A stretch of DNA of 64,000 nucleotides from Hemiscyllium ocellatum (Eukaryota): NCBI RefSeq assembly GCF_020745735.1, contig NC_083402.1, positions 8,260,004 through 8,324,003 on the forward strand, in the 5' to 3' direction. Below the pieces are notes generated by a model. That model did not search any database. It saw nothing but the letters and a program-made list of their open reading frames with translations, and was not told the DNA's origin. How positions within the stretch are numbered: the stretch's first letter is position 1; every line of letters begins with the position of its first letter. The position numbers and the translations under genes were made by a program. Positions 11,128-48,963 of this stretch are shown here, one piece after another.

Positions 11128-11188
11128 ATGAGGTCTCTCTATGTTTGTCTTTCTGCATTCCTGCTGTCAGTCTCAGTACAGGGTCACA
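11128..11188 (+). CDS. SIGLEC15-like: Exon 1: signal peptide of Siglec-15-like gene (MRSLYVCLSAFLLSVSVQGH)
   Basis: ATG, hydrophobic core and a VQG cleavage-type motif. It ends in phase 1 at a consensus donor CA|GTAAGT (11189). Confidence 0.75.
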
Positions 11189-19172: not shown

Positions 19173-19559
19173 CGGATTCTGCTAATGGTTGGTCAATGAC
19201 AATCGCGGATGGAGTGAGGGCTGAGGAAGGAGGCTCCGCTGTCTTACCCTGCAGCTTCACCCACCCTGACGCTCACCTCACACTTACCGGCTCCATCTTA
19301 TGGCACAAGGCGGAAACACAGGCTTTAATCTTTAAGTGTACATATCCTGGTCCAGACCATTCCCAGGGTGAGCTGTGTGAGAATGTGAGACAGCGGGATG
19401 GTAGGAATCGATTCAGATTCGTGGGGAACCTCAGCAACAAAGATGCCTCAATAATGATGGAGGGACTGAACCAGGAGGATGCTGGTTCCTATCGGTGTCG
19501 TGTGGAGCTCAATATTAACAATTTTGGATCTGGAAAAGGAACACGCCTGGAAGTGGAAG
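19173..19559 (+). CDS. SIGLEC15-like: V-set Ig exon A1, Siglec-15-like, sialic-acid-binding Arg retained
   Basis: Acceptor (ct)n-cccacag|, donor G|GTGAGG, 387 nt, phase 1-1. WSMT..VRAEEGGSAVLPCSFTHP, IFKC..ELCE, RFRFVGN, DAGSYRCRVEL, GTRLEV align by eye with Siglec-15 (WSMQ..AEAGDAAVLPCTFTHP, VFRC..ELCQ, RFRLLGN, YFCRVEF). Arg codon at 19499-19501. Confidence 0.88.
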
Positions 19560-26836: not shown

Positions 26837-26877
<41 letters not shown>

Positions 26878-27806: not shown

Positions 27807-27886
<80 letters not shown>

Positions 27887-28965: not shown

Positions 28966-29178
28966 TTAATCTTGTAATCAAGGTTTTCAAATTGAGTGGC
29001 GAGGAGACATTTTGATCAGGATGACTCTTGTTGGGGAATGTCTAGGACAGACCTGTTAGAGATGTGAGTGGAGTCTTTAATTGTTAATTTTATTGTGAAG
29101 TTGAAAGGAATATAACATATTGAAATAAGAACTTCTGCACACTGACCTCACCCATCCTGATGTTTGTCCTTTCCTCAG

Positions 29179-29526
29179 CTTCTCAGGAAAATGTCTCAGT
29201 GGTGAGTGGGACAGAGGGAGATTCAGTCACTTTACCCTGTATCTTCAGGCGCTGGGACTCCCACGTACTGACCAATGTTACCTGGATGAGGAAGGAGCCT
29301 TACCAACACATCGTTACATTTACAGCCCAATCACAGGGAAATTGGACAACTGGACACGGTGGAAATCGGTACGAGCTCATCGGGAACCCAGAGGAGGGAA
29401 ACGCCTCGACCAGGATAAACCAGCTGAGTGTGAGGGACAATCACACTTACCTGTGTCTGGTGGAATACAGGTCAGAACCTGATTCTCAGTATCTGATCCA
29501 GAAAGAGACTCGGCTGCAGGTACATG
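29179..29526 (+). CDS. V-set Ig exon B1 (Siglec-15-related, lacks the essential Arg)
   Basis: Acceptor tttgtcctttcctcag|, donor G|GTAAGA, 348 nt, phase 1-1, no stops. GDSVTLPC, W-MRKEPY (cf. Siglec-15 W-RAGEPY), RYELIGNP, DNHTYLCLVEY, TRLQV. Confidence 0.85.
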
Positions 29527-31124
29527 GTAAGAAACCGTTCCCACATTCTTCAGCCTGTAGAAGGTGCACAGTGAGAGTGGAACAGATTCTGTGAATGTTT
29601 TGTGATTTGATTTTCTGGTGAAAAGACATGGAACTAAAACATTAACCCTGTTTCTCTCCATCGGTATTGTCTGCCCTGCTGAGTGTTTGCAGCATTTTGA
29701 TGTTTATTTAAAATGTCCAGCATCTGTAGTATTTTAGCTTTTGGTTTCAAATTTAATTTTTTTCAATATTTAAAGTACTATGATGTGCTGATATTTTTAG
29801 GTGCACTCTGATGTCAGTATTGAAAGACATTGACACACTCAGAATATTTAGTTCAATCTCCAAATGACCCAAACTTATACTGGCATTAAGATCATCTCCT
29901 TGAACAGGAAGGTGCTACAGACTAATGTGTCCCTCTTGGTTCCAACCTTCATCAGGAATAGTTCCATCAATGCAAGTACGTTCCCCCAGTGTCCATCTGA
30001 CTGTGTGAGGCATCACAGCCACGTGGGACCTATCCTAGCCCTGCATTCACACATGGGTGATAACAGGAGTTGGTGGTATACTGTTACTGTTACTGTTATG
30101 TCACTGGGTGACTAATCCAGAGACCCAATCCTCGGGCCATGGGTTCAAATCCCACCACAGTAGAAGGTGATTTGTTTTAAAATCTGGAATTTGAAAAAAA
30201 AGCTAACCTAATGGTTACATGTGCCCATTGTTGAGATTTGGAAAAGCCGATCTGATTCAATCATACACTTTAGGGAATCTGGGCTTTGGTTAGTTAGCTG
30301 GACGGTTGGTTTGCAAAGCAGTGTGATGCCAACAGTGTGGGCTCAATCCCCACATTGACTCAGGTGACCATGAAGCACCCTCCTTCTCAACTCTCCCCTC
30401 ACTGAGGTGTGGTGGCCCTCAGGTTAAACCACCACCAGTTGTCTCTCTCTCTCTCTCTGTCTCTCACTGTCTCTATCTGTCTGTCTGTCTCTCTCTCTCT
30501 CTCTCAAGAGAAAGCAGCCCATGGTCTGGTAGGAATATGGCGACTTGATTTAGAGAATGAAATCTGCCATTCACACTCAGTGTCATGTGTTGCCATATGC
30601 ACAATATTGAGCCCTCTCTCTCCATCAGCACCACCTCACGCAGGCTCAGGGCTGCTAATAATCCACCAACTCTGCACAGTCCACTTCTAACTCTGTATTG
30701 GGAAAGCAAAACACAGACTGGATGATTACTTTGCAGAACAGAAATGTTCTGCCCACAAAAATGATTCTCAGCAGCCAGTTGCCTGCCATTTCCACACACC
30801 ACTTTTTGGGGACCCAGTGACCTTCTGGACTCAATATTGAGGTGAATAATTTTAGGGCCTCAGCACCTTCTCCTACCTCCTTCCCCAACCCCCACACACC
30901 AGGCCTTGTCATCACATGGGCTACTACCAAAACAATCCATTGTCAGTGACGAATGGTCCCCATCAGCAGCTGTTCACTCTCCCAGGCCGACCTTTCCCCT
31001 TTCGTTTGTCTGTCCAATTGTTTTTCTCTCTGTCTGGGGTCCCTTCCCACTGAGTGTTTACTCCTGCCTCCTCCCCCCTCCCCATCTTCAGCATCTATAC
31101 CAACCTTTCCGCAGCTATAATCAG

Positions 31125-34100
31125 TTATAGAGTCATACAGCACAGGAGCAGACCCTTCAGTTCAACTAGTCCATATTGACCATAATCCCAAACTAAAGTA
31201 GACCCACCTACCTGCGCTTTGTACATATCCCTCCAAACATTTCTTTTTCATCCACCATTTCCTCTGGAAGTTCATTCCACATGAACCACTCTCTGTGCAA
31301 AATAAAAACTGCCCCTTAGAGGCATAGAGTCATAGAGATGTACAGCTTGGAAACAGACCCGCTGGTCCAACTCGTCCATGCCGACCAGATATCCCAACCC
31401 AATCTCGTTCCACCTGCCAGCACCCAGGCCATATCCCTTCAAATCCTTCCTATTCATATACCCATACAAATGCCACTTAAATGTTGCAATTGTACCAGCC
31501 TCCACCACTTCCTCTGGCAGCTCATTCCATACACGTACCACCTTCTGTGTGAAAACGTTGCCCCTTAGGTCTGTTTGCTATCTTTCCCCTCTCACCCTAA
31601 ACCTCTGCCCTCTCGTTCTGGACTTCCCAACCCCAGGGAAAAGATTTTGCCTATTTATCCTATCCATGCCCCTCCCGTAATTTTGTAAACCTCTATCAGG
31701 TCACCCCTCAGCCTCCTTCCTTATGTCTTTTTAAAATCTTTCTCCTCTCACCTTAAAGATATGCCCCAGTCTTGAAATCTCCCACCTGAGCAAAAAGACA
31801 CCTGCCATTCACCTTATCTATATTCCTCATGCTTTCATCGATCTTGATAAGGTCACCTCTCAACCTAGTACACTCCAGTGAGAAATGTCCCAGTCGCTCC
31901 AGTCTCTTCCGGTAACTCAAGGCCTACTTTCTCGGCAACTTCCTGGTAAATCTCTTCTGAACCCTCTCCAGCTAAATGATATCCTTGTAATAACAGGGTG
32001 ACCAGAACTGGACACAACAGAGGCCTCACCAGCATCCTGTCTAACCTGAACATAATATACCAACTCCGATAATCAAAGGTCTGAGCAATGAAGGCAAGTG
32101 TGCTGAACCACCGTATATATAGATGATGCAAACTTGGAAGAATTCTGTACCTGAATCCCTAGGTCTCTGTTCTACAGCACGACCCAAGGCCCTACTTTTA
32201 ATTGTGTAAGTCTTCCCTTTGTTTGTTTTTCCAAAATGCAATACCTCACACTTATCTTCAACTCTATCTGTCACTCTTCAGCCCATTGAGCCATTTGATA
32301 AAGATCTTTTTGTATTCTAAGATAACCTTCTTCACTGTTCAATATTCCATCAATTTTGGGATCAACCACAAACTTGCAAAACATGCTTTTTGTAATCTCA
32401 TCGAAATTGTTCATATAAATCAGTGACAAAAGTGGGCCCAGCCCTGATCCCCGTGGAACCCTGCTGGTCACAGGCCTCCAGAACAAAACCCTCCCTCCAC
32501 CGTCACTCTCTGTCTTCTGCCTTTCAGCCAATTGTGCATCCACTTGCCAAGCTCACCCGGAATCCCATGGGATCTAACTTCACTAATTAGTCTACCATGC
32601 GGAACCTTGTCAAAGGATTAACCAAAGTCTAAGTAAACAATGTTAACCCCTCTGCCCTCATCAATTTTCTTGTTTACTTCTTCAAAAAACTCAATCGAGT
32701 TTCTGAGACACAATATCCCTTGCACAAAACCATGCTGACTATCCCAAATCATTCCTTGCCTCTCCAAATGCATATAAATCCAAAATTTTGGAACAACTTA
32801 CTCACCACTGAAGTCAGACTCACAGGTCTGAAGTTCCCAGGCTTCTCCTGACATCCCTTCTTGAATATTAGCCACTCTCCAGTCATTCAGCACCTGACTG
32901 TTATTCATGGACGATACAAATGTTCCTGCAGGGGGCCCAGCAATTTCCTCTTCACTTCTGACAAAGTCCTGGGATTGAGTAGATCACGTCTCAGAGATTT
33001 ATATTTATATTTTCGAAGATCTCTAACAATTCCTCTTCTGTACTGCACGCTGTTTTCAAAATGTTAATATTTATTTCTCAGAGTTCTCTCACCTCCACTT
33101 GTTTCTCCACAGTAAAAACTGACACAAAATATTCATTTGATATCTCTCCCATCTCCTGAGTGGTGGCATGATGGCTCAGTGGTTAGCACTGGCACCGGGG
33201 ACCTGAGTTCAATTCCAGCCTCAGGCAGCTGGAGTTTGCATGTTCTCCCTGTGTGGTGAGGGTTTCCTCCCACAGTCCAAAGATGTACAGGTTAGGTGAA
33301 TTGGCCATGCTACGTTGCCCATAGTATTAGGTGTATTAGTCAATGGAAATGGGTCTGGGTGGGTTACTCTTTCGAAGGTCGGTGTGGACTTGTTGGGCCG
33401 AAGGGCCTGTTTCCACATTAGATTAGATTAGATTAGTTACAGTGTGGAAACAGGCCCTTAGGCCCAACAAGTCCACACTGACCCGCCGAAGCGCAACTCA
33501 CCCAGACCCATTCACGTACATTTACCCCTTCACATAACACTACGGTCAATTTTAGCTTAGCCAATTCACCAAATGTGCACATTTTGTGGACTGTGGGAGG
33601 AAACTGGAGCACCCAGAGGAGACCCACGCAGACACGGGGAGAATGTGCAAACTCCAAAATGAGGCGTAGAATTGAACCCAGGTCTGTGGCGCTGTGAGGC
33701 AGCAGTGCTAACCACTGTGCAACCATGCCCCCACATTGTAGGGAATCTAAAACACAAAGACAACCTCTTTGCTTTTTAAGGAGGCTTACACTCTATCTCT
33801 TGTTGCTGTCTTGGTCTTAATGTACTTATAGAATCCCTTTGGATTATCCTTAACCTTATTTGCTGAGCCTATCCCATATTTTTTCTTTGATTTCCAGAAC
33901 TCTCTCTTATGAATGCCCCGACACTCATTATATGGTGCAAGAGATCCAATTGGATCCAGTTGTTTGTATTTAGTATATGATCCTTTTTTATCCCTGACTG
34001 GAACCTCCATCTCTTTATTCACACATTGTTCCCGAAAGCAGTACAGTTGAAACCATCCTTTGTGAATGGTCTTTTCTGCCTCAGAAGAGATCGCAGTGAT

Positions 34101-34703
34101 CCAAGAATCTGAATCCCTGAACATTACACCACCTCTTCAGCCATTGATTTGTCTCCTTTCTCCTTTTGTTCCCTCATTTGAGTTCGAGTCTGGGAGTAAA
34201 TTAGAGATTAGTACTTTTGAGGGTCTGTTTTTTAAATTTTCGACCTAACCTCTGATATTCACTTTGTAAAGCCTTTATTCTTTCCCTAACCATGTCATTC
34301 CCATCAATATGTACAAAAACTTCCAGTATCTCACTCTTCCCTTGAACAGTATGTGTCAAACATTTTGCAGTGTCCTTAATCCTAGCACCAAGAAAACAGT
34401 ATAATATCCAAGATTCATGCTCACTGCTGCAGAGTCTCCTGTCTGTGCCCTTGACAGGAGAATCACCTACAACAATTATTCTTTTAAAAGGAGACTTATC
34501 TATTTTCGCGCTCTGCAGGGTTTCTAATACCTCTTCCTTGTGAACCTCAATCCCACCTAGTCTAGTAGCCTGTATCTCAGTATTCTCCTTGACAACATTG
34601 TCGTTTTCGAGAGTGAATACTGTTGAAAAATATTCGTTTAGTGCTTCCCCTGTCGCCTCTGACTCCACACACAACTTCCCACTACTATCCTTGGTTGGCC
34701 CTT
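31125..34703 (-). mobile_element. Stack of nested CR1 fragments (3' tails, RT, ORF1 esterase-like piece)
   Basis: Repeated CR1 tails (agagtcatagag..acag). The minus strand gives RT motifs GSGLGPLLSLIYMN and the esterase-like IIVVGDSPVKG. Confidence 0.8.
33163..33735. mobile_element. Tail-to-tail pair of HE1-type SINEs (+ then -), specific to copy 1
   Basis: The + SINE ends gggcctgtttccacatta; it abuts gattagattag..cagtgtggaaacaggccc of a minus SINE. The site is empty in copy 2 (~54175). Confidence 0.85.
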
Positions 34704-35070
34704 GATTGGGCAATGACAATCGTGGATGGAGTGAGGGCTGAGGAAGGAGGCTCCGCTGTCTTACCCTGCAGCTTCACCCACCATGACACTAACCTCACAC
34801 TCACCGGCTCCATCTTATGGTACAAGGAGGAAACACGGGCTTTTATCTTTACCTGTACATATCCTGGTCCAGACCATTCCCAGGGTGAGCTATGTGAGAA
34901 TGTGAGACAGCGGGACGGTGGGAATCGATTCAGATTCGTGGGGAGTCTCACCAACAAAGATGCCTCAGTAATGATGGAGGGACTGAGCCAGGAGGATGCT
35001 GGTCCCTATCGTGTGGAACTCAATATTGATAGTTTTCAAACAAAGTCTCCAACAAAGCTGGAAGTTGAAG
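34704..35070 (+). pseudogene. V-set exon A2 (pseudo-exon)
   Basis: A-type sequence, but the acceptor and first codons are replaced by a CR1 fragment. The donor is mutated (G|GAAAGG), and a 6-nt deletion removes the F-strand Cys (DAGPYRVEL). Confidence 0.85.
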
Positions 35071-35439
35071 GAAAGGAACAATGTTTGGATGGTGTCACTG
35101 CCCCGATAGCTCAACGAGAACAGGGTCTACCTGGGCCCGGAGAACTCGGGTTGGCTCCTTCTCTTGGGCTCTTTCAGTTGGTCTCAGGCAGGAGACAGTG
35201 AGAAGGAGAGAGAGAGAGAGAGAGAGATGAGGCTGGGATTATGGACCATTCCACCACTGTGTCTGAAACTTCCCACAGTCTCCCAACAACTCCCTAATTT
35301 GTTGTGTTCAAACTGGCTTCAGTGTTCTGAGGTAGGGACCAGAGAAAACATCACCAAGGATGCAAGCTCCAAGATCCACCTGGTTCCATGTTCCCTATGG
35401 GCAATATGGAGTCAATGACAGGGATCTCAAGGATGGATC

Positions 35440-36640
35440 TGGATAAAGGAAGTCGGGGGTCAGAGTGCATCGGTTTTTGAAGATGTCAGGACATGTTGAG
35501 AATGTGGTTGGAAAAGCAAATGGGATTTACAGGTTTCAGAAATGGAGGTGTTGAGAACTGAGGCAGGTAGCCCATAAGACATAGGAACAGAGGAAGGCCA
35601 TTCAGCCCATTGAGACTGTTCCACATTCAATGAGATCATGACTGAGATGATAAACATCAATTCCCCATTCTTGCTTTATCTTCACAATCCCTGATTCCGT
35701 GAATGATTAAAAATTTGTCTATCTCAGCCTTGGCTATACTTAATGACCCAACATGACCTCCTCTCTGTAGTAAAGTAGTCCAGAGATTCACTACCCTCTT
35801 AGAGAAGAAATTCCTCTCATCTGAAATGTGTAACCCCTCATTCTGAGCTGATGCCCTCTGTTCCTGACAAGGGGGACAACCACGCTGCATCCACCTTATC
35901 AAGCACCCGAAGCATCTTTAATGTCTCACTTTGGTCACTTGTCATTCTTCTGTAATCCATCAAGCACAGGCTCAATCTTGTCAAACGCTGCCCATAAGAC
36001 CGCCCCTCCCGACCTGGCATCAACTAATTGAATCTTCTCTGGACTGCCTCCAATGCCAGTTTCACTTTCCTTTGATAAGGGAACAAACCTATCCACAATA
36101 TTCCAGCTGTGAGCTAACTAGTGTCTGGTAAAACCTCCCCACTTTAAAATTCGATTCCATTTGAAATAAAGGTCAGCATTCCATTGCCCTTCCCTACTCT
36201 CTGCTGAATGTTTTTGTGAATCTTCCATATTCTTCTGTTCTGGAACTTTCTGCAGGCTTTCTCTGTTTCACTAATATTCAGCCTCTCTATTCTTTGTGCC
36301 AAATGTATAACCTTACATTTTCCACATTATATTCCAATTGCCAAGTCTTTCCCACTTATTTAACCTGTCGACATCTCTCTGCAGCTTCTGTATTTCATCC
36401 TCATCACTTGCCTTCTCACCTACATTTTTGTCATCAGCAAACTTGGCTACAGTGCATTCACTGACCTCATCCAAATCATTAATGTATATTCTCATAAATG
36501 TGGCCCCATCTCAGATCCTGTGATACACCACTAATTACAGTTTGCAGGCTGAATATCACTCCCGTGTTATCCCAACTCTCTGTTTTCTATCAGTTGGTCA
36601 ATTCTCTATCCATGTTCGTACACTACCACCAGCACCATAG
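35440..36640 (-). mobile_element. CR1 fragment (shared with copy 2, 59880-60929)
   Basis: The minus strand reads YINDLDEVSECTVAKFADD. Confidence 0.8.
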
Positions 36641-36679
36641 AATCTAATCGCATTAAGGAGCTTAATGTGTTGCACCTTC

Positions 36680-39260
36680 TGAAATATCCGCCCCGATTCC
36701 CGCCCCCACGCCTAACCCCACCTCCACTCCCAGCTCCAGCCCCACACCAGGTCCTAGCTCCCAGCCCTGCCGTGTTTTCACCATCCCTCCAGACCGCCCA
36801 CTCTCTGAGGATGAACGATCGGTCCTCGGCAGAGGCCTCACCTTCATTCCCCTACGCTCTCGGATTAACGAGTTCAACACGCGGCGAGACATCGGACAAT
36901 TCTTCCGCCGCCTTCACCTCCACGCCTACTTCTTCAAACAGGATTCTCGCCCACCCTCTGACGTCCCCTTGTCCCGCCTCCAACACACCTCATCCACCTG
37001 GACACCCTGTGCTGGCCTCTTACCCGCCCTCGATTTCTTCATTGCCAACTGCCGCCGCAACATTAACCGCCTCAACCTCTCCACCCCTCTCACCCACTCC
37101 AACCTCTCACCCTCGGAATGTGCAGCCTTCCACTCCCTCCGCTCCAACTCAACCTCACTATCAAACCAGCAGACAAGGGAGGCGCGGGAGTAGTTTGGCG
37201 CACCGACCTTTACACCGCTGAGGCTAAATGCCAGCTCGCGGATACCTCCTCCTACTGCCCCCTTGACCATGACCCCACCTCCCACCACCAAACCATCATC
37301 TCCCAGACCATCCATAGCCTCATCACCTCAGGGGATCTCCCATCCACCACCTCCAACCTCATAGTCCCACAACCCCGCACCGCCCGTTTCTTCCTCCTGC
37401 CCAAAATCCACAAACCTGACTGCCCCTGGCCGACCCATTGTCTCAGCCTGATCCTGCCCCACCGAACTCATCTCCGCATGCCTCGACACAGTTCTGTCCC
37501 CCTTAGTCCAAGAACTCCCCACCTACGTTTGGGACACCATCCACGCCCTCCACCTCTTCCATGATTTTTGCTTCCCCAGTCCCCAAAGCCTTATCTTCAC
37601 TATGGACGTCCAGTCCCTGTACACCTCCATCCCCCATCACGAAGGCCTCAAGGCCCTCTGCTTCTTCCTTTCCTGCCGTACCAACCAGTACCCTTCCACT
37701 GACACCCTCCTTCAACCGACTGAACTGGTCCTAACTCTGAACAACTTCTCTTTCCAATCCTCCCACTTCCTCCAAACCAAAGTTGTAGCCATGGGCTCCC
37801 GCATGGGCCCCAGCTATGGTTTCCTCTTCGTGGGATATGTGGAACAGTCCGTCTTCCGCAGCTACACTGGCACCATCCCCCACCTTTTCCTCCGCTACAA
37901 CGATGACTGTATCGTTGCTGCCTCGTGCTCCCATGAGGAAGGTTGAACAGTTCATCCACTTTACCAACGCCTTCCACCCCGACCTCAAATTTATCTGGAC
38001 CATCTCAGACTCCTCCCTCCCCTTCCTAGACCTCTCCATTTCTATCTTGGAAGACTGAATCAACACGGACATTAACTATAAACCGACCGATTCCACATCT
38101 ACCTAGACTACACCTCGTCCCACCCTGCCCCCTGTAAAAACGCCATCCCATATTTCCACTTCCTTCGTCTCCGCTGCATCTGCTCCCAGGAGGACCAGTT
38201 CCAATACCGAACAACCCAGATCGCCTCCTTCTTCAAAGAACGCAATTTCTCCCCCAATCATGGCCGACAATGCTCTCGGCTGCATCTCCTCCGCTTCCCG
38301 CTCCTTCGTCCTTGAGCCCTGCCCCTCCAATCGTGACCAGGACAGAACCCTACTGGTCCTCACCTCCCACCCCACCAACCTCCATAAACATCATATCATC
38401 CGTCGTCATTTCCGCCACCTCCAAACGGACCCCACCACCAGGAATATATTTCTCTGCCCTCCCCTATCAGCATTCCGAAAAGACCACTCCCTCAGTGACT
38501 CCCTTGTCAGGTCCACATCTCCCACCACCCCAACCTCCACTCTCGGTACCTTCCCCTGCAAACGCAAGAAATGCAAAATTTGCGCCCACACCTCCCCCCT
38601 TACTTCCCTCTAAGGCCCCAAGATTTCCTTCCATATCTGCCACAGATTCACCTGCACCTCCACACACACCATTTACTGCATCCGCTGCACCCGATGTGGC
38701 CACCTCTTTCTTGGGGAGACAGGCCGCCTAATTGTGGAACATTTCAGAGAACACCTCTGGGACTGCCAGATCAACCAACCCAACCACCCTGTGGATCAAC
38801 ACTTCAATTCCCACTCCCACTCCACCAAGGACACGCAGGTCCTTGGACTTCTCCATCGCCAGACCACAGCAACACGACGGCTGGAGGAAGAGCGCCTCAT
38901 CTTCCGCCTTGGAACCCTCCAACCACATGGGATAAACTCAGATTTCTCCAGTTTCCTCATTACCCCTCCCCCACCTTAAATCAGTCCCAACCCTCGAACT
39001 CAGCACCACCTTCCTAACCTGCAATCTTATTCCTGACCTCTCCACCCTCACTCCCACTCCAACCTATCAACCTCACCTTAACCTCCTTCCACCTATTGCA
39101 CTTCCAACGCCTCTCCCCCAAGTCCCTCCTCCCTACCTTTTATCTTAGCCTGTTTGGCATACTCTCCTCATTTCTGGAGAAGGGCTCATGACCGAAACGT
39201 CGATTCTCCTGCTCCTTGGATGCTGCCTGACCTGCTGTGCTTTTCCAGCAACACATTGAC
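36680..39260 (+). mobile_element. Penelope-like element (RT + GIY-YIG), frameshifted, with 3' pLTR
   Basis: IKPADKGG, MDVQSLYTSIPH, AMGSRMGPSY, LRYNDD, CKRKKCKIC, GET..EH, EEERLIFRLGTLQP motifs. Confidence 0.92.
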
Positions 39261-39279
39261 ACCTCTGCTGTCAATCTTG

Positions 39280-40025
39280 CCCCACCCTAAAGGAGCCTTT
39301 CACATCCATCAAAGATTTACCTGCGCATCCAGCAATATCATTTATTGAATCCGTTGCTCCCGATGCAGTGTCCTCTACATTGGGGAGACTGGACGCTCCT
39401 AGTACAGCACTTCAGGGAACATCTCCGGGACACCCATACCAATCAACCCCACTGCCCTGCGGCCCAAAATTTCAACTCCCCCTCCCACTCCGCTAAGGAC
39501 ATGCAGGTCCTGGGCCTCCTCCACTGCCGCACCCTCACAGGAAAAACACCTCATCTTCCGCCTCAGAACACTTCAACCCCATGACATCAATGTGGAGTTC
39601 ACCAGTTTCCTCATTTCCCCTTCCCCCACCTCACCCCAGATCCAACCTTCCAGCTCAGCACCGCCCTCATGAATTGTCCTATCTGCTAATCTTCCTTTCC
39701 ACCTATCCACTCCACCCTCCTCTCTGACCAATCACCTTCTTCTCCACCCCCCCATTCACCCATTGTACTCTTTGCTACCTTCCCCCACCCTCCTCTCTGA
39801 CCTATCACCTCCATCCCCACCCCCATTCCTTTATTGAACGAGATGCTACCTTCTCCCCACCCCCACCTCCCTCTCATTTGTCTCTCCACTCTGCAGGCAC
39901 CCTGCCTCGATTCCTGATGAAGGACTTTTGCACGAAACATTGATTTTCCTGCTCCTTGGATGCTGCCTGACCTGCTGTGCTTTTCCAGCACCACTCTAAT
40001 CTCGACTCTGGTTTCCAGCATCTGT
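39280..40025 (+). mobile_element. Second Penelope GIY-YIG/pLTR fragment
   Basis: HQRFTCASSNIIY, YIGET-like sequence. pLTR with cctgatgaaggacttttgcacgaaac at ~39910. Confidence 0.75.
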
Positions 40026-40889
40026 TTTTATCTGTTTATACCCACCCTCAACTACATCCCTGCAATAACAACTAAATCACATACCAATGTGTTAATCTAC
40101 ACCCTCAGCTCATCTGCCTTTCTCACAAGTAAATGCCATCCAGCCATGCCACACTCCCTTATGCCCTCCCTTGATGATATTCACACTGCCTTCTGGATTT
40201 CCTTGGATCATCTGTTGGATCAGTTAGCTTGGTTGGCTGGACAGTTGGTTTGCGATGTGGAGTAATGCCAACAATGCGGGTTTAATTCCCATCCTGCCTG
40301 TGGGGACCATGAAGGGTCTCAGGTTCTCAACCGTGTCCCTGTCTGAGGCAGAGTGGCCCTCAGGTTAAATCACCATCAGTCACCTCTCTCTAATGAGACA
40401 GCAGTTCTCTGGGATTATGACTGATTTATTTTTTTACTTCAGTTCTCCTTCTTCATGTCTCTGTGTATCACCTTCACCCTCTGCAATACTTTCACTGTGT
40501 ACCCCATCCCTCTGCTACGCCTGATGAATGAGCCAGGTTGCTGAAGGCTGGCTCGGTACTAGAGTAGAAGGTGATGGGAAATAGAAAAGGTTCTGCAGGG
40601 AGGGCCCTGAGTCCTGCTCTTCACATCACTCTGGGTCTCCTGGAAACTCTCAGGCACCAAAAACTCTCATCAACCAACAGCAACAAACACCCACAGTCGA
40701 ACCACAAACCCCCTGAAACCTCCTGTTGTGCTCCAGCCTGTAGCTCATTCCACACTGTCCCAGGTTAGTTTATAAACCACGACTGAAAAATGTTATATCT
40801 TTTCTCATCATACAACAGATTCAGTGTTTTACCTCACTGTTTGGTGTCTGTGCTGTGTTCATATCCTCTCTCTCTCTCCCCCCTCACAG

Positions 40890-41276
40890 CTTTGTCTGCT
40901 AATGGTTGGTCAATGACAATCGCGGATGGAGTGTGGGCTGAGGAAGGAGGCTCCGCTGTCTTACCCTGCAGCTTCACCCACCCTGACACTCACCTCACAC
41001 TCACCGGCTCCATCTTATGGTACAAGGAGGAAACACGGGCTTTAATCTTTAACTGCACATATCCTGGTCCAGACGATTCCCAGGGTGAGCTGTGTGAGAA
41101 TGTGAGACAGCGGGACGGTGGGAATCGATTCAGATTCGTGGGGAGTCTCACCAACAAAGATGCCTCAATAATGATGGAGGGACTGAGCCGGGAGGATGCT
41201 GGTTCCTATTGGTGTCGTGTGGAGCTCAATATCGGCAACTTTCAATCATGGTATGGAACAAGCCTGGAAGTGAAAG
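40890..41276 (+). CDS. SIGLEC15-like: V-set Ig exon A3, Siglec-15-like, essential Arg retained
   Basis: Acceptor (ct)n-ccctcacag|, donor G|GTGAGG, 387 nt, phase 1-1, four Cys, YWCRVEL (Arg 41216-41218). Confidence 0.88.
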
Positions 41277-42754
41277 GTGAGGAACAATGTTCTGATGGTG
41301 TCAGTGCCCTGGCAGCTCAATGGGGACAGGCTCCACCAGGTCCGGGAGTTCTCGGGTTGGTTCCTACTCCTGGGCTCTTCCAATTGGTCTCAGGCAGGAG
41401 GCAGTGAGAAGGACAGAGAGAGAGGGAGAGACCTGGCTGGGATTTACAGACCAATCCATTTCCGACTCTGAAACCTCCCACAGTCACTCATTTGCTGTGG
41501 TCAGACCGGCGTCAGTTTTTTTTGGACAGGGAACAGACACAACATCATCAAGGATTCAAGCTCCAAGACCCCCTTCCCAATGACAGTCCTGCTCTATCGG
41601 CATTGGGTGAGAAAAAGAGATCCATAAATTCTGAGCCCTCATTGGATGAGCACGTCTCAGAGTGAGGGAACCCTCAGCTCGCATTGGCTGAAAACCTCAC
41701 TGTTTCTATCTTCCCTTTCTATTGGCTGAACAGAAAATAGATGGATGGGGGGAGAAGGAATCTGCAGAGGCTAATGTCCTGGGGAATACTTTCCAATCCA
41801 TGGCAGATTGTGAAATTTGAATTTGAAAGGAATCTAGACTGAAAAGCCAGTTTAATAAAGACCATGTAGCCACCTCCGACAAAAAAAAACCTGGTTCACT
41901 CATTTCCTTTAGGGAGGGAAATCTGTATCCTTAATGGTCTGACCTACATGCGGCCCCATACCCACTGTAATGAGGTTGACTCTTAACTGCCCCCTGAATG
42001 ACTCACTCTGTTGTGGACAAGGAGTGAACCCAGGTGTGTAAATGGAATTGTGACTCCAAGAGTAGGCCACAGGCTGGAGATCCTGTAAATTAACACACCT
42101 CCTGACTCCAAAGCATATTGACCAGTTAGAAGTGTGATGGAATACTCCCCACTTGTCTGGAAGAGTGCAGGAAAATATATTGCTGCCCTGTCACTGTCAC
42201 TGGGTCAAAATCCTGGAACTCCCACCCCAACAGTATTGTAACAATAAAAATAACAACAAAATACACTGCAGCAAGACAGCAACACTTCCTCCACCAGCAC
42301 CTTCCAAAGTAGTGACCTCTATGACCTCAGTGTAAAAAATGGCGTCAGATACAGACCATCCTGACTGGGAAATATAGTTATCTTTTCATTGTTCAAGGGG
42401 ACATGGGTGTCACATGCTCGGTCAGCCTATATTGGCTATCCCTAATTGCCCTGGAGAAGGGAATGGTAAGCTGCCTTCTTGATCTGCTGCATCCCCTCAG
42501 CTGCAGGGAATTCACGATAAGGTTGGTTAAGGATTCCAAGGGCTTTGTCCCAGTCACACTGAAGTAATGATGAAATATTCCCAAATCAAGATGGTGAGTG
42601 TATTGGAGGGAAGCTTGTAAGTGGTGATGTTCTCATGTATATAGTGGAGGGAAAGTCATTGATGATACAGCAGGAGATGGTTAGGCTGAGGACTCTACAC
42701 TGAGGAACTCCTGCAGGGATGTTCTGGAGCTGAGATGACTGACCAACAACCACA

Positions 42755-44860
42755 ATCATAGTCCCACAACCCCACACCGCCCGTTTCTACCTCCTGTCCA
42801 AAATCCACAAACCTGACTGCTCCAGCCGACCCATTTTCTCAGCCTGCTCCTGCCCCACAGAAAAAACTTCCCACCACCAAACTATCATTTCCCCAACCAT
42901 CCACAACCTCATCACCTCAGAGGATCACCCATCCACCGCCTCCAACCGCATAATCCCACAACCCCACACCGCCCGTTTCTTCCTCCTGCCCAAAATCCAC
43001 AAACCTGATTGCCCCGGCCGACCCATTGTCTGAGCCTGCTCCTGCTTACACAGAACTCATCTCTCCTTACCTCGACATGATCCTGTCCCCCTTAGTCCAA
43101 GATCTCCCCACCTATGTTTGGAACACCACCCACGCCCTCCACCTCCTCCATGATTTTTACTTCCCTGGTCCCCAACGCCTTATCTTCACAATGGACATCC
43201 AGTCCCTGTACACCTCCATCCCCCATCACGAAGGACTCAAAGCCCTCTGCTTCTTCGTTTCCCTCCATACCAACCAGTACCCTTCCACTGACACCCTCCT
43301 TTGACTGACTGAACTGGTCCTCACCCTGAACAACGTCTCGTTCCAATCCTCCCACTTCCTCCAAACCAAAGGAGTAGCCATGGGCACCCGCATGGGCCCC
43401 AGCTATGCCTGCCTCTTCGTAGGATATGTGGAACAGTCCATCTTCCGCAGCTACACTGGCATCACCCCCACCTTTTCCTCCGCTACATCGATGACTGTAT
43501 CGGTGCTGCCTCGTGCTCCCATGAGGAGGTTGAACAGTTCATTAACTTTACTAACACCTTCCAGCCCGACCTCAAATTTATCTGGACCATCTCAGACTCC
43601 TCCCTCCCCTTCCTAGACCTTTCCATTTCTATCTCGGGCGACCGAATGAACACGTACATTTACTATAAACTGACCGATTCCCACAGCTACCTAGCCTACA
43701 CCTCCTCCCACTCTGCCCCCTGTAAAAACGCCATCCCATACTCCCAATTTCTTTGTCTCCGCCGCATCTGCTCCCAGGAGGACCAATTCCAATACCGTAC
43801 AAGCTAGATGGTCTCCTTCTTCAAAGTCCGCAATTTCCCCCAGACATAATCGACGATGCCCTCCTCTGCATCTCCTCCACTTCCCGCTCCTCTGCCCTTG
43901 AGCCCTGCCCCTCCAATCGCCACCAGGACAGAACCCCACTGGTCCTCACCTACCACCCCACCAACCTCCATACACATCGTATCATCCGTCGTCATTTCCG
44001 CCACTTCCAAACTTACCCCACCACTAGGGATATATTTCCCTCCCCTCCCCTATCAGCATTCCAAAAAGACCACTCCCTCATCAGATCCACACCCCCCACC
44101 AACCCAACCTCCACTCCCGGCACCTTCCCCTGCAACTGCAAGAAATGCAAAACTTGCGCCCACACCTCCCCCCTTACTTTTCTCCAAGGCCCCAAGGGAT
44201 CCTTCCATATCTGCCACAAATTCACCTGCACCTCCACACACATCATTTACTGCATCTGCTGCACCCGATGTGGCCTCCTCTATATTGGGGAGACAGGCCA
44301 CCTACTTGCAGAACGTTTCAGAGAACACCTCTGGGGCACCCGGACCAACCAACCCAACCACCCCGTGGCTCAAAACTTCAACTCTTCTTCCCACTCCACC
44401 AAGGACATGCAGGTCCTAGGACTCCTACATCGCCAAACCATAGCAACACGACGGCTGGAGGAAGAGCACCTCATCTTCCGCCTAGGAACCCTCCAACCAC
44501 AAGGGATGAACGCAGATTTCTCCAATTTCCTCATTTCCCGTCCCTCCACCTTGTCTCAGTCAAATCCCTCGAACTCAGCACCGCCTTCATAACCTGCAAA
44601 CTTCTTCCTGACCTCTCGGCCCTCACCCCAACTCCGGCCTATCACCCTCACCTTGACTTCCTTCCACCTATCGCACTTCCAACGCCCCTCCCCCAAGTCC
44701 CTCCTCCCTACCTTTTATCTTAGCCTGCTGGACACACTTTCCTCATTCCTGAAGAAGGGCTCATGCCCGAAACATCGATTCTCCTGCTCCTTGGATGCTG
44801 CCTGACCTGCTACGCTTTTCCAGCAACACATTTTCAGCTCTGATCTCCAGCATCTGCAGT
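42755..44860 (+). mobile_element. Penelope-like element (RT + GIY-YIG + pLTR), specific to copy 2
   Basis: TMDIQSLYTSIPH, MGTRMGPSYACLFVGYVE, YIDD, FTCTSTHIIYCICC..LYIGETG..RFREH. Confidence 0.92.
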
Positions 44861-44899
44861 CCCCACTTTCTCCTCCAACAACCACAACAATCTGGGTTT

Positions 44900-45200
44900 G
44901 ATTCCAGTCTGAGGTAACAGTCTGTGTGGAGTTTACACATTCTCCCTGTGTCTGTGTGGGTTTCCTCTGGGTACTCTGGTTTTCTCTCACAATCCAAAGA
45001 TGTACAGGTCAGGTGAGTTAGCCATGCTAAATTGCTCATAGTGTTCATGGATATACAGGTTAGGTGTATCAGTTCAGGGTAAATGTAGAGTAATAGGTTC
45101 GGGTTGGGAATGGGCCTGGGTGGATCACTCTCTTCAGACGGTTGGTGTGGACTTGTAGGGCCAAATGGCCTGCTTCCACAATGAAAGGATTCTATGAACC
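44900..45200 (+). mobile_element. 5'-truncated HE1-type SINE
   Basis: gtgtggagtttacacattctccctgtg core and gggcc..cctgcttccac tail. Confidence 0.75.
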
Positions 45201-45419
45201 ATCTTCCTCTGTGCCAGGTCTGACTGAAACCCATGGAGGTTTCTCCCCTCGGCTTCCCACTGGCTCAGGTTCCTTGATGCTACACTCGCTCAAATACAGC
45301 CTTGATGTTAAAGGCAGTCACTGATACCTTCAATCAGTTTAATTGGTCTGGTCAGACCCACCTTGCTTTTTGTGGACAGGGTATACCTGGGTATTGTTGG
45401 GTAGATGCCAGTGTCATAA

Positions 45420-46590
45420 TTAGAAGAAGAACAAATAACAATACAGCACAGGAACATGCCCTTCCATCCCCCAAACCAGCGCTGACACATTTTGCCTTTC
45501 CATACTCAAACTGTCTTCACTTACAGGATCAGCATCCTTTCCTATTCATGTATTCATCCAGGTGCTTCTGGAATGCTGCTATAGTGTCTGCTTCCACCAC
45601 CTCCACTGGCAGTGCGTTGCAGCCACTCACCCACCTTTTGTGTGAGAAACCTGCCTTGTACATCTCTTAATACCACCACCACCACCCTCCCCCCCACCCT
45701 CTCCAAACCCCAGCCCCATATCTTAAACCCATGTCCTCTAGTAATTGACCCCTCTACTAGGGGGAAAAAGCCTCATATATTCCACTTTATCCCTGCCATT
45801 CACAATCTTATAAACTTCGATGAGGTCACCCCTCAACCTCCTGAGTTCCAGTGAAAAAAAAACCAGTCTATCCACCCGTTCTTCACAGCTAAAATCCCCC
45901 ATTCAAGACAATATCCTGGTAAACCATTTCTGTACTCTCTCCAAAGCATCCATATCCTTCTGGTAGTGTGGTGACTAAAACTGCACCTAATATTCCAAGT
46001 GTGGCCGAATTAAAGTTCTTTAAAGCTGCAGCATAACTTTGTCTGTCGTTATACTCAATGCTCCTTCCAATGAAGGCAATGATGCTGTGGGCCTTTTTCA
46101 CTCCCTTATCTGTCTGCTTTGTCACCTCCAGAGAGCTGTAGACCTGCACACCCAGATCCCTCTGCATATTAATCCTCCTCAGGGTTCTGCCATTCAGTGT
46201 TTAATTTCCACCTGCACTTGACATTCCAAAATACATCAGTCACATTTGTCTGGATTAAACTCCATCTGCTATCGAACTGATCTGTATCCTGCTGAATCTT
46301 CTGATAATCCTTCTCATTATCCTTAATTCCACCAATCTTTACATCGCCTGCAAAATTACAAATTAGATCAGACACATTTTCCTCCAAATCATTGGATAGG
46401 CCATGAACAGCAGACGTCCCAGCACTGATCCCTGTGGAACATCACTTGTTACAACCCTCCATTCCATTGTTACCCTCTGTCTCCTATGACTAAGTCAGTT
46501 CGGTGTCCACATTGCCAGCTCACCCCGATACCATGTGACTTCACATTTTTACCAGTCTGCAGTGAGGGATCTTGTCAAAGGCTTGACTGA
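45420..46590 (-). mobile_element. CR1 fragment
   Basis: The minus strand reads RDLGVQVYSSL and FAGDVKIGG; CR1 tail at ~45440. Confidence 0.8.
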
Positions 46591-46756
46591 AGTCTGTCTA
46601 TAGCAGGACTGCAGAGCCATCTGATCCATTGGTTATGGGGTGGCTCTGTTGTGTGCTGTTTCTGTTGTTTGATGAGCAAGTAGTCCTGGGGATGTTGTAG
46701 ATTCAGTGTGTTGGCCTCACACATTTGAATTTGCCTGGTGTTGTACACAGTCAAGG

Positions 46757-46935
46757 TTAGAGTGGTGCTGGAAAAGCACAGCAGGTCAGGCAACATCTGA
46801 GGAGCAGGAAAATCAATGTTTCGGGCAGAAGCCCTTCATCAGGAATGTAGCTGATGAAGGGCTCCGGCCCGAAAAGGTGATTTTCCTGCTCTTGGATACT
46901 GCCTGACCTACTGTGCTTTTCCAGCACCACTCTAA
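46757..46935. repeat. Hairpin: head-to-head inverted pair of Penelope pLTRs
   Basis: Arms of ~85 bp (46757-46842 and 46851-46935) around the spacer gaatgtag. Confidence 0.85.
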
Positions 46936-48615
46936 TCCTGACTCTGATCTCCAGGATCTGCAGCCCTCACTTTTACCTGGTATTGCATGCAGCAAAATCA
47001 TGTGTCTCTTCATTGATCTCCCAGCCTGACGGGAATGTTGGTGTGGGGGGTGTTAATGTGGATTGTGAGGTTACAGATTGAAGTTCAATGGGCTTACAAT
47101 GTAGTCTTTAACTTGGGAACTTCATACTGGGGAGTCCCTGGGCAACTCCCACCTGATGGTATACCACTGTGCCTCCACCTCTGCTGGGTTAGTCCTGGTG
47201 GTGGGTCAGGCTGTGTCCAGGGACAGTCATCGTGGTGTCTGTAATATTGTAAGTTATGGTTCTGTGAGTTTGACCATGTGAGGCTGTTAGTCGACCCGTC
47301 TGTGCACTAGCTCCTAGATGTTACTGAGGAGGCCTTTGCAGGGTTGACAGGGCTGGGACTGTTCTCACTGTTATTGGGGCCTTGGTCAATGCAGTGTAGT
47401 CTGAGTCTACTTGTAGTCTATTGGCATTCCTTCACTGTTGCTGGGTCAAAGTCCTGAAACTCAATCCCTTAAATTACTCTGGATAACCCCGACACCTCAG
47501 GGCTGCAGCAGTTGAAGAAAGCAGCTTCTCCTGGGCAATCAGGATGGGACAATAAATGCACATAATCTGGGCCAGTGACACCCACCAAATAAAACAAAAG
47601 TAGAAATTAATGAAACAGCGAACATCCTGAGGAAAATACAAACAAAAAACTGCAGATGCTGCAAATCAGAAACAAAAATGGAAACTGTTGGAAAAGCAAG
47701 TCTGGCAGCACCTGTGGAGAGAAATCAGACTTAATGTTTCAGGCTGAGTGACCCTTCCTCAAGATCCTGAGGAGCTTGACAATGCAGATTCTGAGAGGAT
47801 ATTTGCTCTTGTGAACAGAAGTCAAACAGGGGAACAATTACAAAATAACAGATTACTGATTTAAATAAGAATGAGAGAACATTTAATCTCATAGCTCCTC
47901 TTTTAAGTTCATGCAGCAAAGAGGCACATGGCTGGTTATCCCCCTCCTCCTGCACCCAAATATTTTACTCAGTGTAGGAAAATGTAATCTGGACTCTGAG
48001 TTTAAATTAGCCTGTGCTCACTTCAAAGGTCACAGGTTGGAGCTGGGGAATGGTTACATTAGGAATGACACCAGGGGGCTCTCCTTCACACAGAGTGTGG
48101 TCAATACTTTGAATGTGTTTGAGCAACAGAGTGAGGGGGAGGCTGTAAAATCCTTGACCTTGTTTAAAGAATATTAGTATTGAGCATCGGGCGGAGGGTT
48201 CTGCATGAATGAATTCAGGAGGGTTCAATGGATCTGATCTGTAAGTACCTTCAGCGGTCACACGGCACCAGGTTATAGGCCAACAGGTTTATTTGAAATA
48301 ACAAGGTTCAGAGCACTACTCCTTAATCAGGTGAAGTCCTGGTGCAGTGTGACTTCTGACTTTGTCCACCGCAATGCAACACTGGCACCCCCACATCATG
48401 GAAGTATCTTGTAATCAAGGTTTTCAAATTGAGTGACGAGGAGACATTTTGATCAGGGTGACTCTTGTTGGGGAATGTCTAGGACAGACCTGTTAGAGAT
48501 GTGAGTGGAGTCTTTAATTGTTCATTTTATTGTGAAGTTGAAAGGAATGTAACATATTGAAATAAGAACTTCTGCACACTGACCTCATCCATTCTGATGT
48601 TTGTCCTTTCCTCAG

Positions 48616-48963
48616 CTGCTCAAGGAAATGTCTCAGTGGTGAGTGGGACAGAGGGAGATTCAGTTACTTTACCCTGTATCTTCAGTCACTGGTACTACCC
48701 TCCCCTGTCCACTGTTACCTGGATGAGGAAGGAGCCCTGCCAACACATCGTTACATTTACAGCCCAATCACAGGGAACTTGGACAACTGGACACGGTGGA
48801 AATCGGTACGAGCTCATTGGGAACCCAGAGGAGGGAAACGCCTCGACCAGGATAAACCAGCTGAGTGTGAGGGACAATCACACTTACCTGTGTCTGGTGG
48901 AATACAGTTTCGAACCTGATTCTCAGTATCTGATCCAGAAAGAGACTCGGCTGCAGGTACATG
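48616..48963 (+). CDS. V-set Ig exon B2
   Basis: Same splice sites and 348-nt length as B1, open frame, 22 nt differences from B1. Confidence 0.85.

Follow-up and report, generated by a model that had tools for sequence, protein, structure and literature searches.

Replacement-rich variation in two CDR-like loops of the second V-set domain in a Siglec-15-like receptor family of the epaulette shark

Introduction

In receptors of the KIR and Fc-receptor types the second domain supplies the ligand site through its B-C and F-G loops, at the interdomain elbow, and these families diversify through duplication and conversion. The lysine in the membrane anchor of Siglec-15 serves pairing with an adaptor (DAP12). 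[quoted passage not shown] The teleost NITR and NILT receptors are presented in two other papers (PMC2442602, PMC3022915) as germline multigene families with one or two Ig domains, mostly with an ITIM, whose V domains are strongly diverged.

Here we describe a stretch of 64,000 nucleotides (the window) from contig NC_083402.1 of Hemiscyllium ocellatum (epaulette shark), which contains two copies, B1 and B2, of an exon for the second V-set domain of a Siglec-15-like receptor. The literature searched contained no paper on these shark genes. The two exons differ chiefly in one short loop, and comparison with other members of the family leads us to favour diversifying selection on two CDR-like loops combined with gene conversion among paralogs, to which we assign a probability of roughly 60%.

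Results

A duplicated unit within a large receptor gene cluster

B1 and B2 lie in a tandemly duplicated unit of about 20 kb, composed of an A exon, a B exon and a dead A exon (Table 1), and this unit belongs to a large gene cluster of the epaulette shark. Identity between the two units varies from 79% to 96% along their length. The leader exon listed in Table 1 is the only leader-like match in the window. Searches with family tails as queries returned no membrane-anchor or tail exons within the window; these exons are located past its end.

Table 1. Coordinates of the exons, relics and variable patches within the window
Feature	Position	Strand	Remarks
Leader exon	11128..11193	+	3' end approximate; tblastn with P0005, P0154, P0236 and P0240
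A1 exon, Siglec-15-type V-set	19173..19559	+	387 nt, phase 1-1; arginine motif YRCRVEL
Exon-centred high-identity tract, unit 1	28969..29650	+	~680 bp; partner 48406-49087
B1 exon, second V-set Ig domain of Siglec-15-like receptor	29179..29526	+	348 nt, phase 1-1; without the Siglec arginine
B1 B-C (CDR1-like) loop and start of strand C	29247..29276	+	RRWDSHVLTN; carries NVT N-glycosylation sequon
B1 codons 98-99, end of strand F / F-G turn	29469..29474	+	RS; second variable patch
A2 relic exon	34698..35078	+	approximate bounds; 6-nt deletion removes second Ig cysteine; donor GT changed to GA
A3 exon, second intact A-type V-set	40890..41276	+	YWCRVEL; can be joined in frame to B1 on its 5' side and to B2 on its 3' side
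B2 exon, paralogous copy of B1	48616..48963	+	348 nt, phase 1-1
B2 B-C loop	48684..48713	+	SHWYYPPLST; more derived state
B2 codons 98-99, F-G turn	48906..48911	+	SF; counterpart of B1 RS
A4 relic exon	59276..59661	+	approximate bounds; 6-nt deletion as in A2, plus frameshift

At least 14 epaulette-shark loci represent the family, as clustered paralogs with similar ectodomains and differing signalling tails, and the ectodomains include repeated A-B-A-B arrangements. The tails either contain an ITIM, lack an ITIM and follow an uncharged anchor, or are attached to an anchor with a lysine in the membrane (paralogs P0189, P0007 and P0022). RefSeq names these predicted genes "uncharacterized" or "Siglec-15", and several family members have been automatically named "polymeric immunoglobulin receptor-like". 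The conserved arginine after the F-strand cysteine is present in 50 of 63 A domains.

The B exons and their products

Both B exons are bounded by an AG acceptor and a G|GTAAG donor that can be read directly in the sequence. B1 matches the Pfam V-set family (E 6e-17), and the B domain scores as V-set rather than C2-set, with C' and C'' strands in its AlphaFold model. Residue 94 is a leucine in place of the Siglec arginine (YLCLVEY), as it is in 62 of 73 B domains overall; a single one of the 73 has arginine at this column. A rearranging antigen-receptor V gene was considered and rejected, as B1 and B2 end in splice donors and not in a recombination signal.

The only protein model to use B2 is RefSeq P0238 (LOC132821696 isoform X2), which begins at Met37, downstream of the loop, is identical to B2 from there onward, and joins B2 directly to a membrane-anchor sequence; its anchor is uncharged and its short tail lacks an ITIM, lysine being confined to the other paralogs. 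The retrieved proteins include no product with a complete B1 exon, no whole B1 or B2 core and no full-length product joining B1 to B2. Since P0238 starts past the loop and no whole-B1 product was retrieved, translation of the B1 and B2 loops is presumptive.

Clustering of the B1-B2 differences

The two exons align without gaps and differ by substitution at 22 of 348 sites. A sequence-only reading of this DNA had singled out 30 nt with 11 substitutions in which all eight changed codons, of ten, alter the amino acid; a recount gives the same figures, the two quoted loop sequences are exact, and the division into 30 and 318 nt agrees with the exon bounds. The same reading placed three of the 11 remaining differences, those changing RS to SF, in the F-G loop. 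The count stands (29471, 29473 and 29474 on the forward strand), with the site better described as the end of strand F and the F-G turn. The N-glycosylation sequon of the B1 loop is absent from B2.

This concentration is hard to attribute to chance. The scan probability that any 30-nt window of the exon holds at least 11 of the 22 differences is about 1e-5, and about 7e-4 when the same test is applied to a 1128-nt aligned block with 80 differences. The loop also exceeds the adjacent intron, where 8 of 337 sites differ (Fisher P = 8e-9). The exons sit in a tract of high identity whose non-coding part differs by 2.4%, versus 11.2% over the 446 bp of intron that follow (Fisher P 1.4e-6).

For this pair alone, loop dN/dS is not significantly greater than 1, because path counting by the method of Nei and Gojobori (Sd 2.0, Nd 9.0) takes 2 of the 11 loop steps to be silent-type third-position steps in multiply hit codons. 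Likewise, the 9:2 ratio of replacement to silent steps is not significantly different from that in the rest of the exon (P 0.36), and pS is nominally raised in the loop (0.29 vs 0.06, n=2). Loop replacement divergence exceeds framework silent divergence (OR 10, P 3e-4).

Position of the loops in the predicted fold

In an AlphaFold model of B1 (pLDDT 89.6), strand B spans residues 17-22 and strand C residues 30-39, so that the patch (residues 24-33), described in the sequence-only reading as a CDR1-like loop, maps to the B-C loop and runs four residues into strand C. From the topology of the Ig fold, this loop and the F-G loop are predicted to lie at the N-terminal tip of B, adjoining the junction with A. 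There they could provide a binding site at the elbow or a contact between the domains, and loops next to the A-B junction might also be structural. A two-domain A-B model has a pTM of 0.86, and no solved two-domain structure is close to the predicted geometry, the best match being JAML (TM 0.42). Covariation between the C-C' loop of A and the loops of B was not evident by eye among nine pairs compared.

Variability across sharks and rays

A variability profile of 70 distinct shark and ray B domains has its most variable 10-residue window starting at residue 24, which is the first codon of the B1-B2 patch. Entropy reaches 2.28 bits in the B-C loop and 2.51 bits in the F-G loop, a second hot spot family-wide, and is 0.75-1.1 elsewhere; the C'-C'' region is conserved and variability is confined to the two loops. 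When epaulette-shark B domains are compared in eight independent nearest-neighbour pairs, 17 loop residues account for 43 of the 79 differences (P 3e-16), and all four residues that distinguish B2 from P0240 are loop residues. B1 and B2 are thus two samples of a loop polymorphism found among paralogs across the family and not a simple isolated duplicate pair.

Loop variants in other copies

Other genomic copies carrying either loop were found at the protein level: the exact B1 loop is present in the same-genome paralogs P0181, P0200 and P0237, and the B2 loop with one change (SRWYYPPLST) in P0240, P0205 and P0239. The loops are also differently combined. RRWDSHVLTN is accompanied by the F-G sequence RSEPDSQY in B1 and by RSRRNLLY in P0200 and P0181, while SRWDSHTLTT occurs with RSEPDSQY in P0196 and with RSEHNLLY in P0197, so that all four B-C/F-G combinations are present among paralogs. 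A four-gamete test at the protein level yielded 115 incompatible allele-pair combinations among informative sites. No difference separates B1 from P0181 over 83 residues, after which the final 32 contain six. This evidence for a putative exchange between paralogs consists of protein-level mosaics, and some of the near-identical "paralogs" on unplaced scaffolds may be uncollapsed haplotypes.

Within the 64-kb window neither loop recurs elsewhere with up to three mismatches allowed, and k-mers suggestive of a local template or template switch were absent, at lengths of 11 or more anywhere in the window and of 9-10 within 1.5 kb. Paired frameshifts as the source of the patch were ruled out by the ungapped alignment of the two blocks.

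Replacement and silent changes

DNA-based comparisons covered seven short exons that themselves recombine, with the DNA from outside this genome taken from an older Chiloscyllium punctatum assembly, and used counting methods (minimum changes and pN/pS). Replacements number at least 19 in the B-C loop, against 2 silent changes, and 40 against 25 in the framework (P 0.015), an approximately five-fold enrichment of replacements in the loop. Silent changes per codon are about as frequent in the loop (0.2) as in the framework (0.25). Summed pairwise pN/pS is 2.35 for the loop and 0.48 for the framework. The framework, with a dN/dS of about 0.3-0.5, is under purifying selection and is almost invariant among more than 15 paralogs and several species, which upholds the earlier view that the arginine-less B domain is probably more than an inert spacer.

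Three paralog exons of the bamboo shark (Chiloscyllium punctatum) have loops that are identical or differ by one change, and this loop (AGG AGC TGG GAC TCC CAC ACC CTG ACC ACT) was taken as ancestral. Measured against it, 3-4 of the 8-9 derived changes of B1 and 7-8 of the 13-14 of B2 are in the loop; both lineages are accelerated.

Discussion

Clustered differences, their location in a loop, family-wide hot spots, an excess of replacements, mosaics and homogenised flanks together make up the pattern to be explained. The sequence-only reading had offered either diversifying selection or the conversion of a short tract by a paralog that it had not seen, and both parts of that proposal gain support from the occurrence of the loops in other paralogs, their four combinations and the replacement-only enrichment. 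The data point to selection and conversion acting together rather than one alone. Purifying selection would hold the B framework almost constant, with exchange between copies homogenising it in places, while selection for amino-acid diversity would keep the B-C loop (24-33) and the F-G loop (about 98-104) different between paralogs. Gene conversion or unequal recombination would then move loop variants between frameworks and generate combinatorial B-C and F-G sets. The contrast between B1 and B2 would be one instance of this process, an RRWDSHVLTN variant facing an S[H/R]WYYPPLST variant, each of which occurs in other copies. Variation in these two loops throughout the shark and ray family is expected from selection for diversity combined with exchange of loop variants.

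It is unlikely that neutral conversion is sufficient, that is, that B2 received a few dozen bases of a diverged paralog, and B1 a smaller tract, after homogenisation and without selection on the loop. Such an event would fit the five consecutive mismatches at 29263-29267, the silent-type steps within the patch and the YPPL motif common to an older subfamily (KTRSYPPLTT in P0203, ETRSYPPLTT in P0186), and four-gamete incompatibility is widespread and identity patchy along the duplicated units. However, the donor is missing from the window, both lineages have been altered from the ancestral loop, paralog loops form a graded series and not two blocks, and the enrichment of replacements without silent changes across the family would be unexplained. 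The graded series (RSWDSHTLTT, SRWDSHTLTT, SRWYYPTLTT, SRWYYPPLST, SHWYYPPLST) looks stepwise and, with the uniformly replacement character of the eight changed codons and a loop replacement rate above neutral proxies, might be taken to indicate positive selection through point mutation only, after the B1-B2 duplication and with no exchange between paralogs. We consider this improbable: the four combinations place the same multi-residue B-C and F-G motifs on distinct frameworks, the identity of B1 and P0181 gives way abruptly to block divergence, and eight changes in 30 nt are hard to reach by single steps in a tract that has diverged by 2.4%.

We give still less credence to relaxed constraint, whereby tolerant loops diverged long ago and the surrounding exon and intron were homogenised later. 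The low-divergence tract is centred on the exon and pS is nominally high in the B1-B2 loop, as this history would lead one to expect, but loop divergence (37%) is far above the roughly 21% of those parts of the units that are least homogenised, and among the seven exons the roughly five-fold rise in replacements is unaccompanied by any rise in silent changes per codon. Moreover, the three C. punctatum paralogs keep an identical or one-change loop despite a framework pS of about 0.15, so there are copies in which the loop cannot drift freely. A chimeric assembly, haplotypes that were collapsed or duplicated, or a sequencing error in one patch is very improbable. Several family proteins more than 90% identical to one another do occur on unplaced scaffolds and in two chromosomal blocks, and an N gap and microsatellites are found 1.5 kb upstream of B1; against this, either loop is found independently in other assembly records, P0238 reproduces B2 exactly from Met37, the frames are open with intact splice sites in both exons, and the ungapped alignment contains substitutions only.

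We infer that ligand or pathogen recognition may drive the diversity of the loops, and that the loops may contact a putative ligand. Replacement-rich variation in surface loops, as in diversified paired Ig-receptor families, is seen here in a small sample. A more far-reaching and tentative proposal, which we regard as doubtful at present, is that sharks and rays possess a germline repertoire derived from Siglec-15, in which A, a conserved sialic-acid-type sensor of "self", is coupled to a B domain whose B-C and F-G loops are diversified and exchanged in new combinations across dozens of paralogs. The oldest jawed vertebrates would thereby have an innate recognition system of the NITR/KIR kind, perhaps with a composite site made of the A-B elbow and the hypervariable C-C' loop of A. 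The B1-B2 difference offers a small, clean view of the family pattern. If the favoured reading is true, cartilaginous fish have expanded a receptor family of their own on a Siglec-15 scaffold, with V domains diversified in the germline and the variable surface on the second, non-lectin V domain; the family would stand beside teleost NITRs, mammalian KIR/LILR and CD33-related Siglecs as their elasmobranch equivalent, and would be a system for studying how innate repertoires diversify when a conserved framework is combined with two hot loops and sequence exchange among copies.

Comparison with known systems

Among solved structures the top sequence match of the B profile is pIgR domain 1 (E about 3e-15), although this match covers a generic V-set core (residues 9-97) and the shark family does not have the five-domain pIgR architecture. 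Like NITR and NILT, the shark family is a germline multigene family of Ig-domain receptors with diverged V domains. The sequences give no evidence of NITR/NILT membership, pIgR domain 1 and Siglec-15 being the best solved-structure matches of the B profile, and this family differs in that its hosts are cartilaginous and in that variability is limited to B-C and F-G, with C'-C'' conserved. The resemblance to KIR and Fc receptors may serve as a lead only, as their domains are of the C2/I type, whereas shark B is V-set.

The V-set domain of Siglec-15 (PDB 7zoz) is matched by the A domain (E 1.5e-13), with YRCRVEL opposite YFCRVEF, and also by the B profile (E 2e-12, 28% identity, TM 0.77), and Siglec-15 shares the membrane-anchor lysine with some shark paralogs, namely the three identified above. 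In contrast to Siglec-15, the second shark domain is a V-set without arginine and not a C2-set, the B2-using gene has an uncharged anchor and no ITIM, and the family forms a large cluster with ITIM, neutral and lysine-anchor tails and A-B-A-B ectodomains. The CD33-related Siglec pairs (Siglec-5/14 and Siglec-11/16) provide a parallel: their inhibitory and activating genes are clustered, and sequence passes between the ectodomain exons. There, conversion chiefly maintains similarity in the sialic-acid-binding V domain, whereas in the shark family two loops are kept different on a second, non-lectin V domain.

Clustered differences between two copies of a V-set exon

The two copies (B1 and B2) of the exon for the second V-set domain ("B") of a Siglec-15-like receptor translate as 115-residue V-set Ig domains (Pfam V-set, E 6e-17 and 5e-16) and differ at 22 sites in total. 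Eleven of these fall inside 29247-29276, a patch encoding residues 24-33 (RRWDSHVLTN in B1, SHWYYPPLST in B2), where all eight changed codons alter the amino acid, and three lie at codons 98-99 (RS>SF); the other eight are dispersed, four replacement and four silent. A sequence-only reading of this DNA had quoted both loops, which match the window exactly, and its counts of 11 differences and eight non-synonymous codons were confirmed by exon alignment. The clustering is well past chance (scan statistic, P about 1e-5 for the exon and 7e-4 for the 1128-nt aligned block; Fisher P 8e-9 against neighbouring non-coding flanks with 8 differences in about 335 nt). By path counting, two of the 11 nucleotide steps in the patch are of silent type, at third positions of multiply hit codons (Sd 2.0, Nd 9.0), so the B1-B2 pair alone does not prove a dN/dS above 1 in the loop. 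The non-coding flanks of the exons (28969-29650 and 48406-49087) are 2.4% different and the next 446 bp of intron 11.2% (P 1.4e-6), so that the stretch centred on the exon was recently homogenised or is under constraint. The patch, at 37% divergence, is thus a hypervariable island within the most similar tract of the unit.

Positions of receptor exons and other features in the window
Feature	Position	Strand	Remarks
Leader-like exon	11128-11193	+	sole one in window
A1, intact A-type V exon	19173-19559	+	unit 1
A1 hypervariable segment, residues 39-48	19298-19327		
A1 hypervariable segment, residues 112-120	19517-19543		
N gap	27523-27703		sole N gap of window
B1 exon	29179-29526	+	348 nt, phase 1-1, pyrimidine-rich AG acceptor, donor G|GTAAG
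Dead A exon	34698-35078 (approximate)	+	unit 1; 6-nt deletion; donor GT now GA
A3, intact A-type V exon	40890-41276	+	unit 2
B2 exon	48616-48963	+	348 nt, phase 1-1, pyrimidine-rich AG acceptor, donor G|GTAAG
Dead A exon	59276-59661 (approximate)	+	unit 2; same 6-nt deletion; frameshift
Repeated element copies	37277-39267 vs 42866-44842; also 37447-38097, 43035-43688, 49666-50320, 60948-61294		

Tandem units and gene family

Self-comparison of the window revealed a tandem repeat with a unit of roughly 20 kb, each unit containing an intact A-type V exon, a B exon and a dead A exon; identity between the units is uneven (79%-96%). The A domain resembles the human Siglec-15 V domain (PDB 7zoz, E 1.5e-13), with YRCRVEL aligned to YFCRVEF, and the arginine position of this motif is leucine in B, so that the earlier label of an Arg-less domain is correct. 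The deletion common to both dead A exons removes the second Ig cysteine and, being shared, is older than the unit duplication. A1, B1, A3 and B2 can be joined in a single reading frame, and the 64-kb window showed no exon for a membrane anchor or a tail. About 2.5 kb of unit 1 (26353-28954), comprising CA/TG-rich microsatellites and the N gap, has no unit 2 counterpart and is flanked by inverted repeats (87.5%; 26353-26823 and 28480-28954). Copies of a repeated element with reverse-transcriptase-like open frames (88-94% identity, both orientations) are interspersed with the receptor exons.

In an exhaustive profile-free search, all relatives came from sharks and rays. Restricting the search to the B domain, with a full-length bamboo-shark protein, gave 61 clusters. 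At least 14 of these are loci of the epaulette shark, annotated as "uncharacterized", as "sialic acid-binding Ig-like lectin 15" or as "polymeric immunoglobulin receptor-like". Ectodomains are laid out as A-B, A-B-A-B or A-B-A-B-A-B, and three types of tail occur: with an ITIM, uncharged and lacking an ITIM, and lysine-in-membrane. The predicted protein P0238 (LOC132821696 isoform X2) is identical to B2 from Met37 through the exon end, followed by an uncharged anchor and short tail. Several predicted proteins are more than 90% identical (P0179/P0233, P0200/P0237, P0205/P0239/P0240, P0197/P0232) and are annotated in two accession blocks of the 153.6-Mb chromosome as well as on unplaced scaffolds (59.5, 81.6 and 122 kb); they reflect either a large duplication of very recent date or haplotypes that were left uncollapsed. 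The C-terminal peptide of P0200 is identical to a read-through translation of the post-B1 intron (29527-29594), indicating that this RefSeq model retains the intron of a near-identical copy. In P0042, P0017, P0009, P0010, P0227 and P0238, models from C. punctatum, Rhincodon, C. plagiosum and the epaulette shark, part of the B exon is read in the +2 frame or the protein begins within the exon, at Met37; either there are frameshifts in some copies or automatic pipelines perform poorly on this family.

Loop variability and structural position

Across 70 distinct B domains, mean column entropy is 2.28 bits at residues 24-33 and 2.51 bits at 98-104, against 0.75-1.1 bits elsewhere. Variability peaks in the 10-residue window that opens at residue 24, the first codon picked out in the sequence-only reading, and the C'-C'' (CDR2-like) region is conserved. 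The framework is near-invariant among epaulette-shark paralogs; in eight independent nearest-neighbour pairs of their B domains, 17 loop residues hold 43 of 79 differences (P 3e-16). An independent replicate of the B1-B2 observation comes from B2 and the P0240 B domain, whose four residue differences all fall within the two loops. That observation is real and extends to the family. In domain A the B-C loop is conserved, and the hot spots are the stretch following strand F and the C-C' loop, which in Siglecs is the specificity loop.

An AlphaFold model of B1 based on the family alignment (71 sequences; pLDDT 89.6) has strands B at 17-22, C at 30-39, F at 90-99 and G at 103-114. The patch therefore comprises the B-C loop, as the CDR1-like placement had proposed, plus the initial part of strand C; the RS>SF change is at the F-G turn. 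Among solved structures, B is closest in sequence to pIgR domain 1 (E about 3e-15) and to Siglec-15 (E 2e-12); by structure comparison the fold is generic V-set. A two-domain A-B model (P0240, residues 21-268) is confident (pLDDT 88.3, pTM 0.86), and its A-B geometry matched no solved structure (best TM 0.42, RMSD above 10 A, JAML). In V domains the B-C and F-G loops are adjacent, at the N-terminal tip; from this topology, the tip of B with both loops would adjoin the base of A in the tandem. The loops could make an interdomain contact or, in the style of KIR and Fc receptors, an elbow site, and their surface may be ligand-facing. The B1 loop ends in Asn-Val-Thr (29274-29282), an N-glycosylation sequon arising from ACT>AAT and lacking in B2; since a sequon is present in this segment in 12 of the 73 B domains of the family, presence of a loop glycan differs among paralogs.

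Probable selection and exchange among paralogs

Changes were polarised with five bamboo-shark B exons as DNA. The loop AGG AGC TGG GAC TCC CAC ACC CTG ACC ACT (RSWDSHTLTT) is found in two of these, with a third one base off; C. plagiosum also has the peptide, and Stegostoma has it with a single change. This loop was taken as ancestral. B1 then carries 3-4 derived changes within the loop and five outside it; for B2 the counts are 7-8 and six, three of the latter at the F-G turn; one derived change is common to both. Both lineages are thus accelerated.

The best explanation, to which we assign a probability of about 0.6, combines exchange among paralogs with diversifying selection acting on the two CDR-like loops of B, a conserved second V domain: selection would have diversified the loops of B over a conserved framework, and loop variants would have been exchanged between copies alongside it. 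Neutral short-tract conversion, an unlikely account, would move loops between copies with no preference for replacement changes. Between B1 and B2, replacement divergence in the loop (9/23 sites) exceeds silent divergence in the framework (4/69; OR 10, P 3e-4), where dN/dS is about 0.3-0.5. Nor is the loop equally variable at synonymous sites in our small sample of seven exons: the 10 loop codons require at least 19 replacement and 2 silent changes, and the 99 framework codons at least 40 and 25 (P 0.015), with silent changes per codon equal (0.2 and 0.25). The same figures bear on relaxed constraint amid homogenised flanks, which would suit the low flank divergence and which we regard as very improbable.

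Selection acting through point mutation only, for which the paralog loops, a graded series from the ancestral to the B2 form, might speak, is improbable beside the pairings of loops. P0181, P0200 and P0237, epaulette-shark paralogs with exactly the B1 loop, are otherwise identical to B1 through residue 83 and have RSRRNLLY at F-G for RSEPDSQY in B1. P0196 has the F-G loop of B1 and a different B-C loop, and P0197 joins a P0196-type B-C loop to an NLL-type F-G loop, so that all four combinations exist; a four-gamete test at the protein level gave 115 incompatible allele-pair combinations among informative sites. The B2 loop with His25 changed to Arg is present in P0240, judged from accession order to be a neighbouring locus, as well as on two unplaced scaffolds, the near variant SRWYYPTLTT in P0179 and P0233, and the YPPL motif is common to the B2-type loop and an older subfamily. 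Other epaulette-shark proteins thus carry either loop, exactly for B1 and with one change for B2, and the 64-kb window contains no donor for either. An assembly artefact is extremely improbable given this recurrence. The mosaic loops and the exon-centred tract fit reticulate evolution, in which frameworks would have been exchanged and loops reassorted.

Comparison with known receptor families

Clustered paired Ig receptor families with diversified loops and gene conversion are already well known as a kind of system. KIR are one example of clustered paired Ig receptors. Further examples are the CD33-related Siglecs (PMC5701461, PMC4042635) and the NITRs (PMC2442602). The literature searched yielded no paper on a shark Siglec-15-like receptor family. 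The family described here differs from CD33-related Siglecs, NITRs and KIR in its Siglec-15-type V domain, in bearing its variable loops on a second V domain, and in its elasmobranch host.
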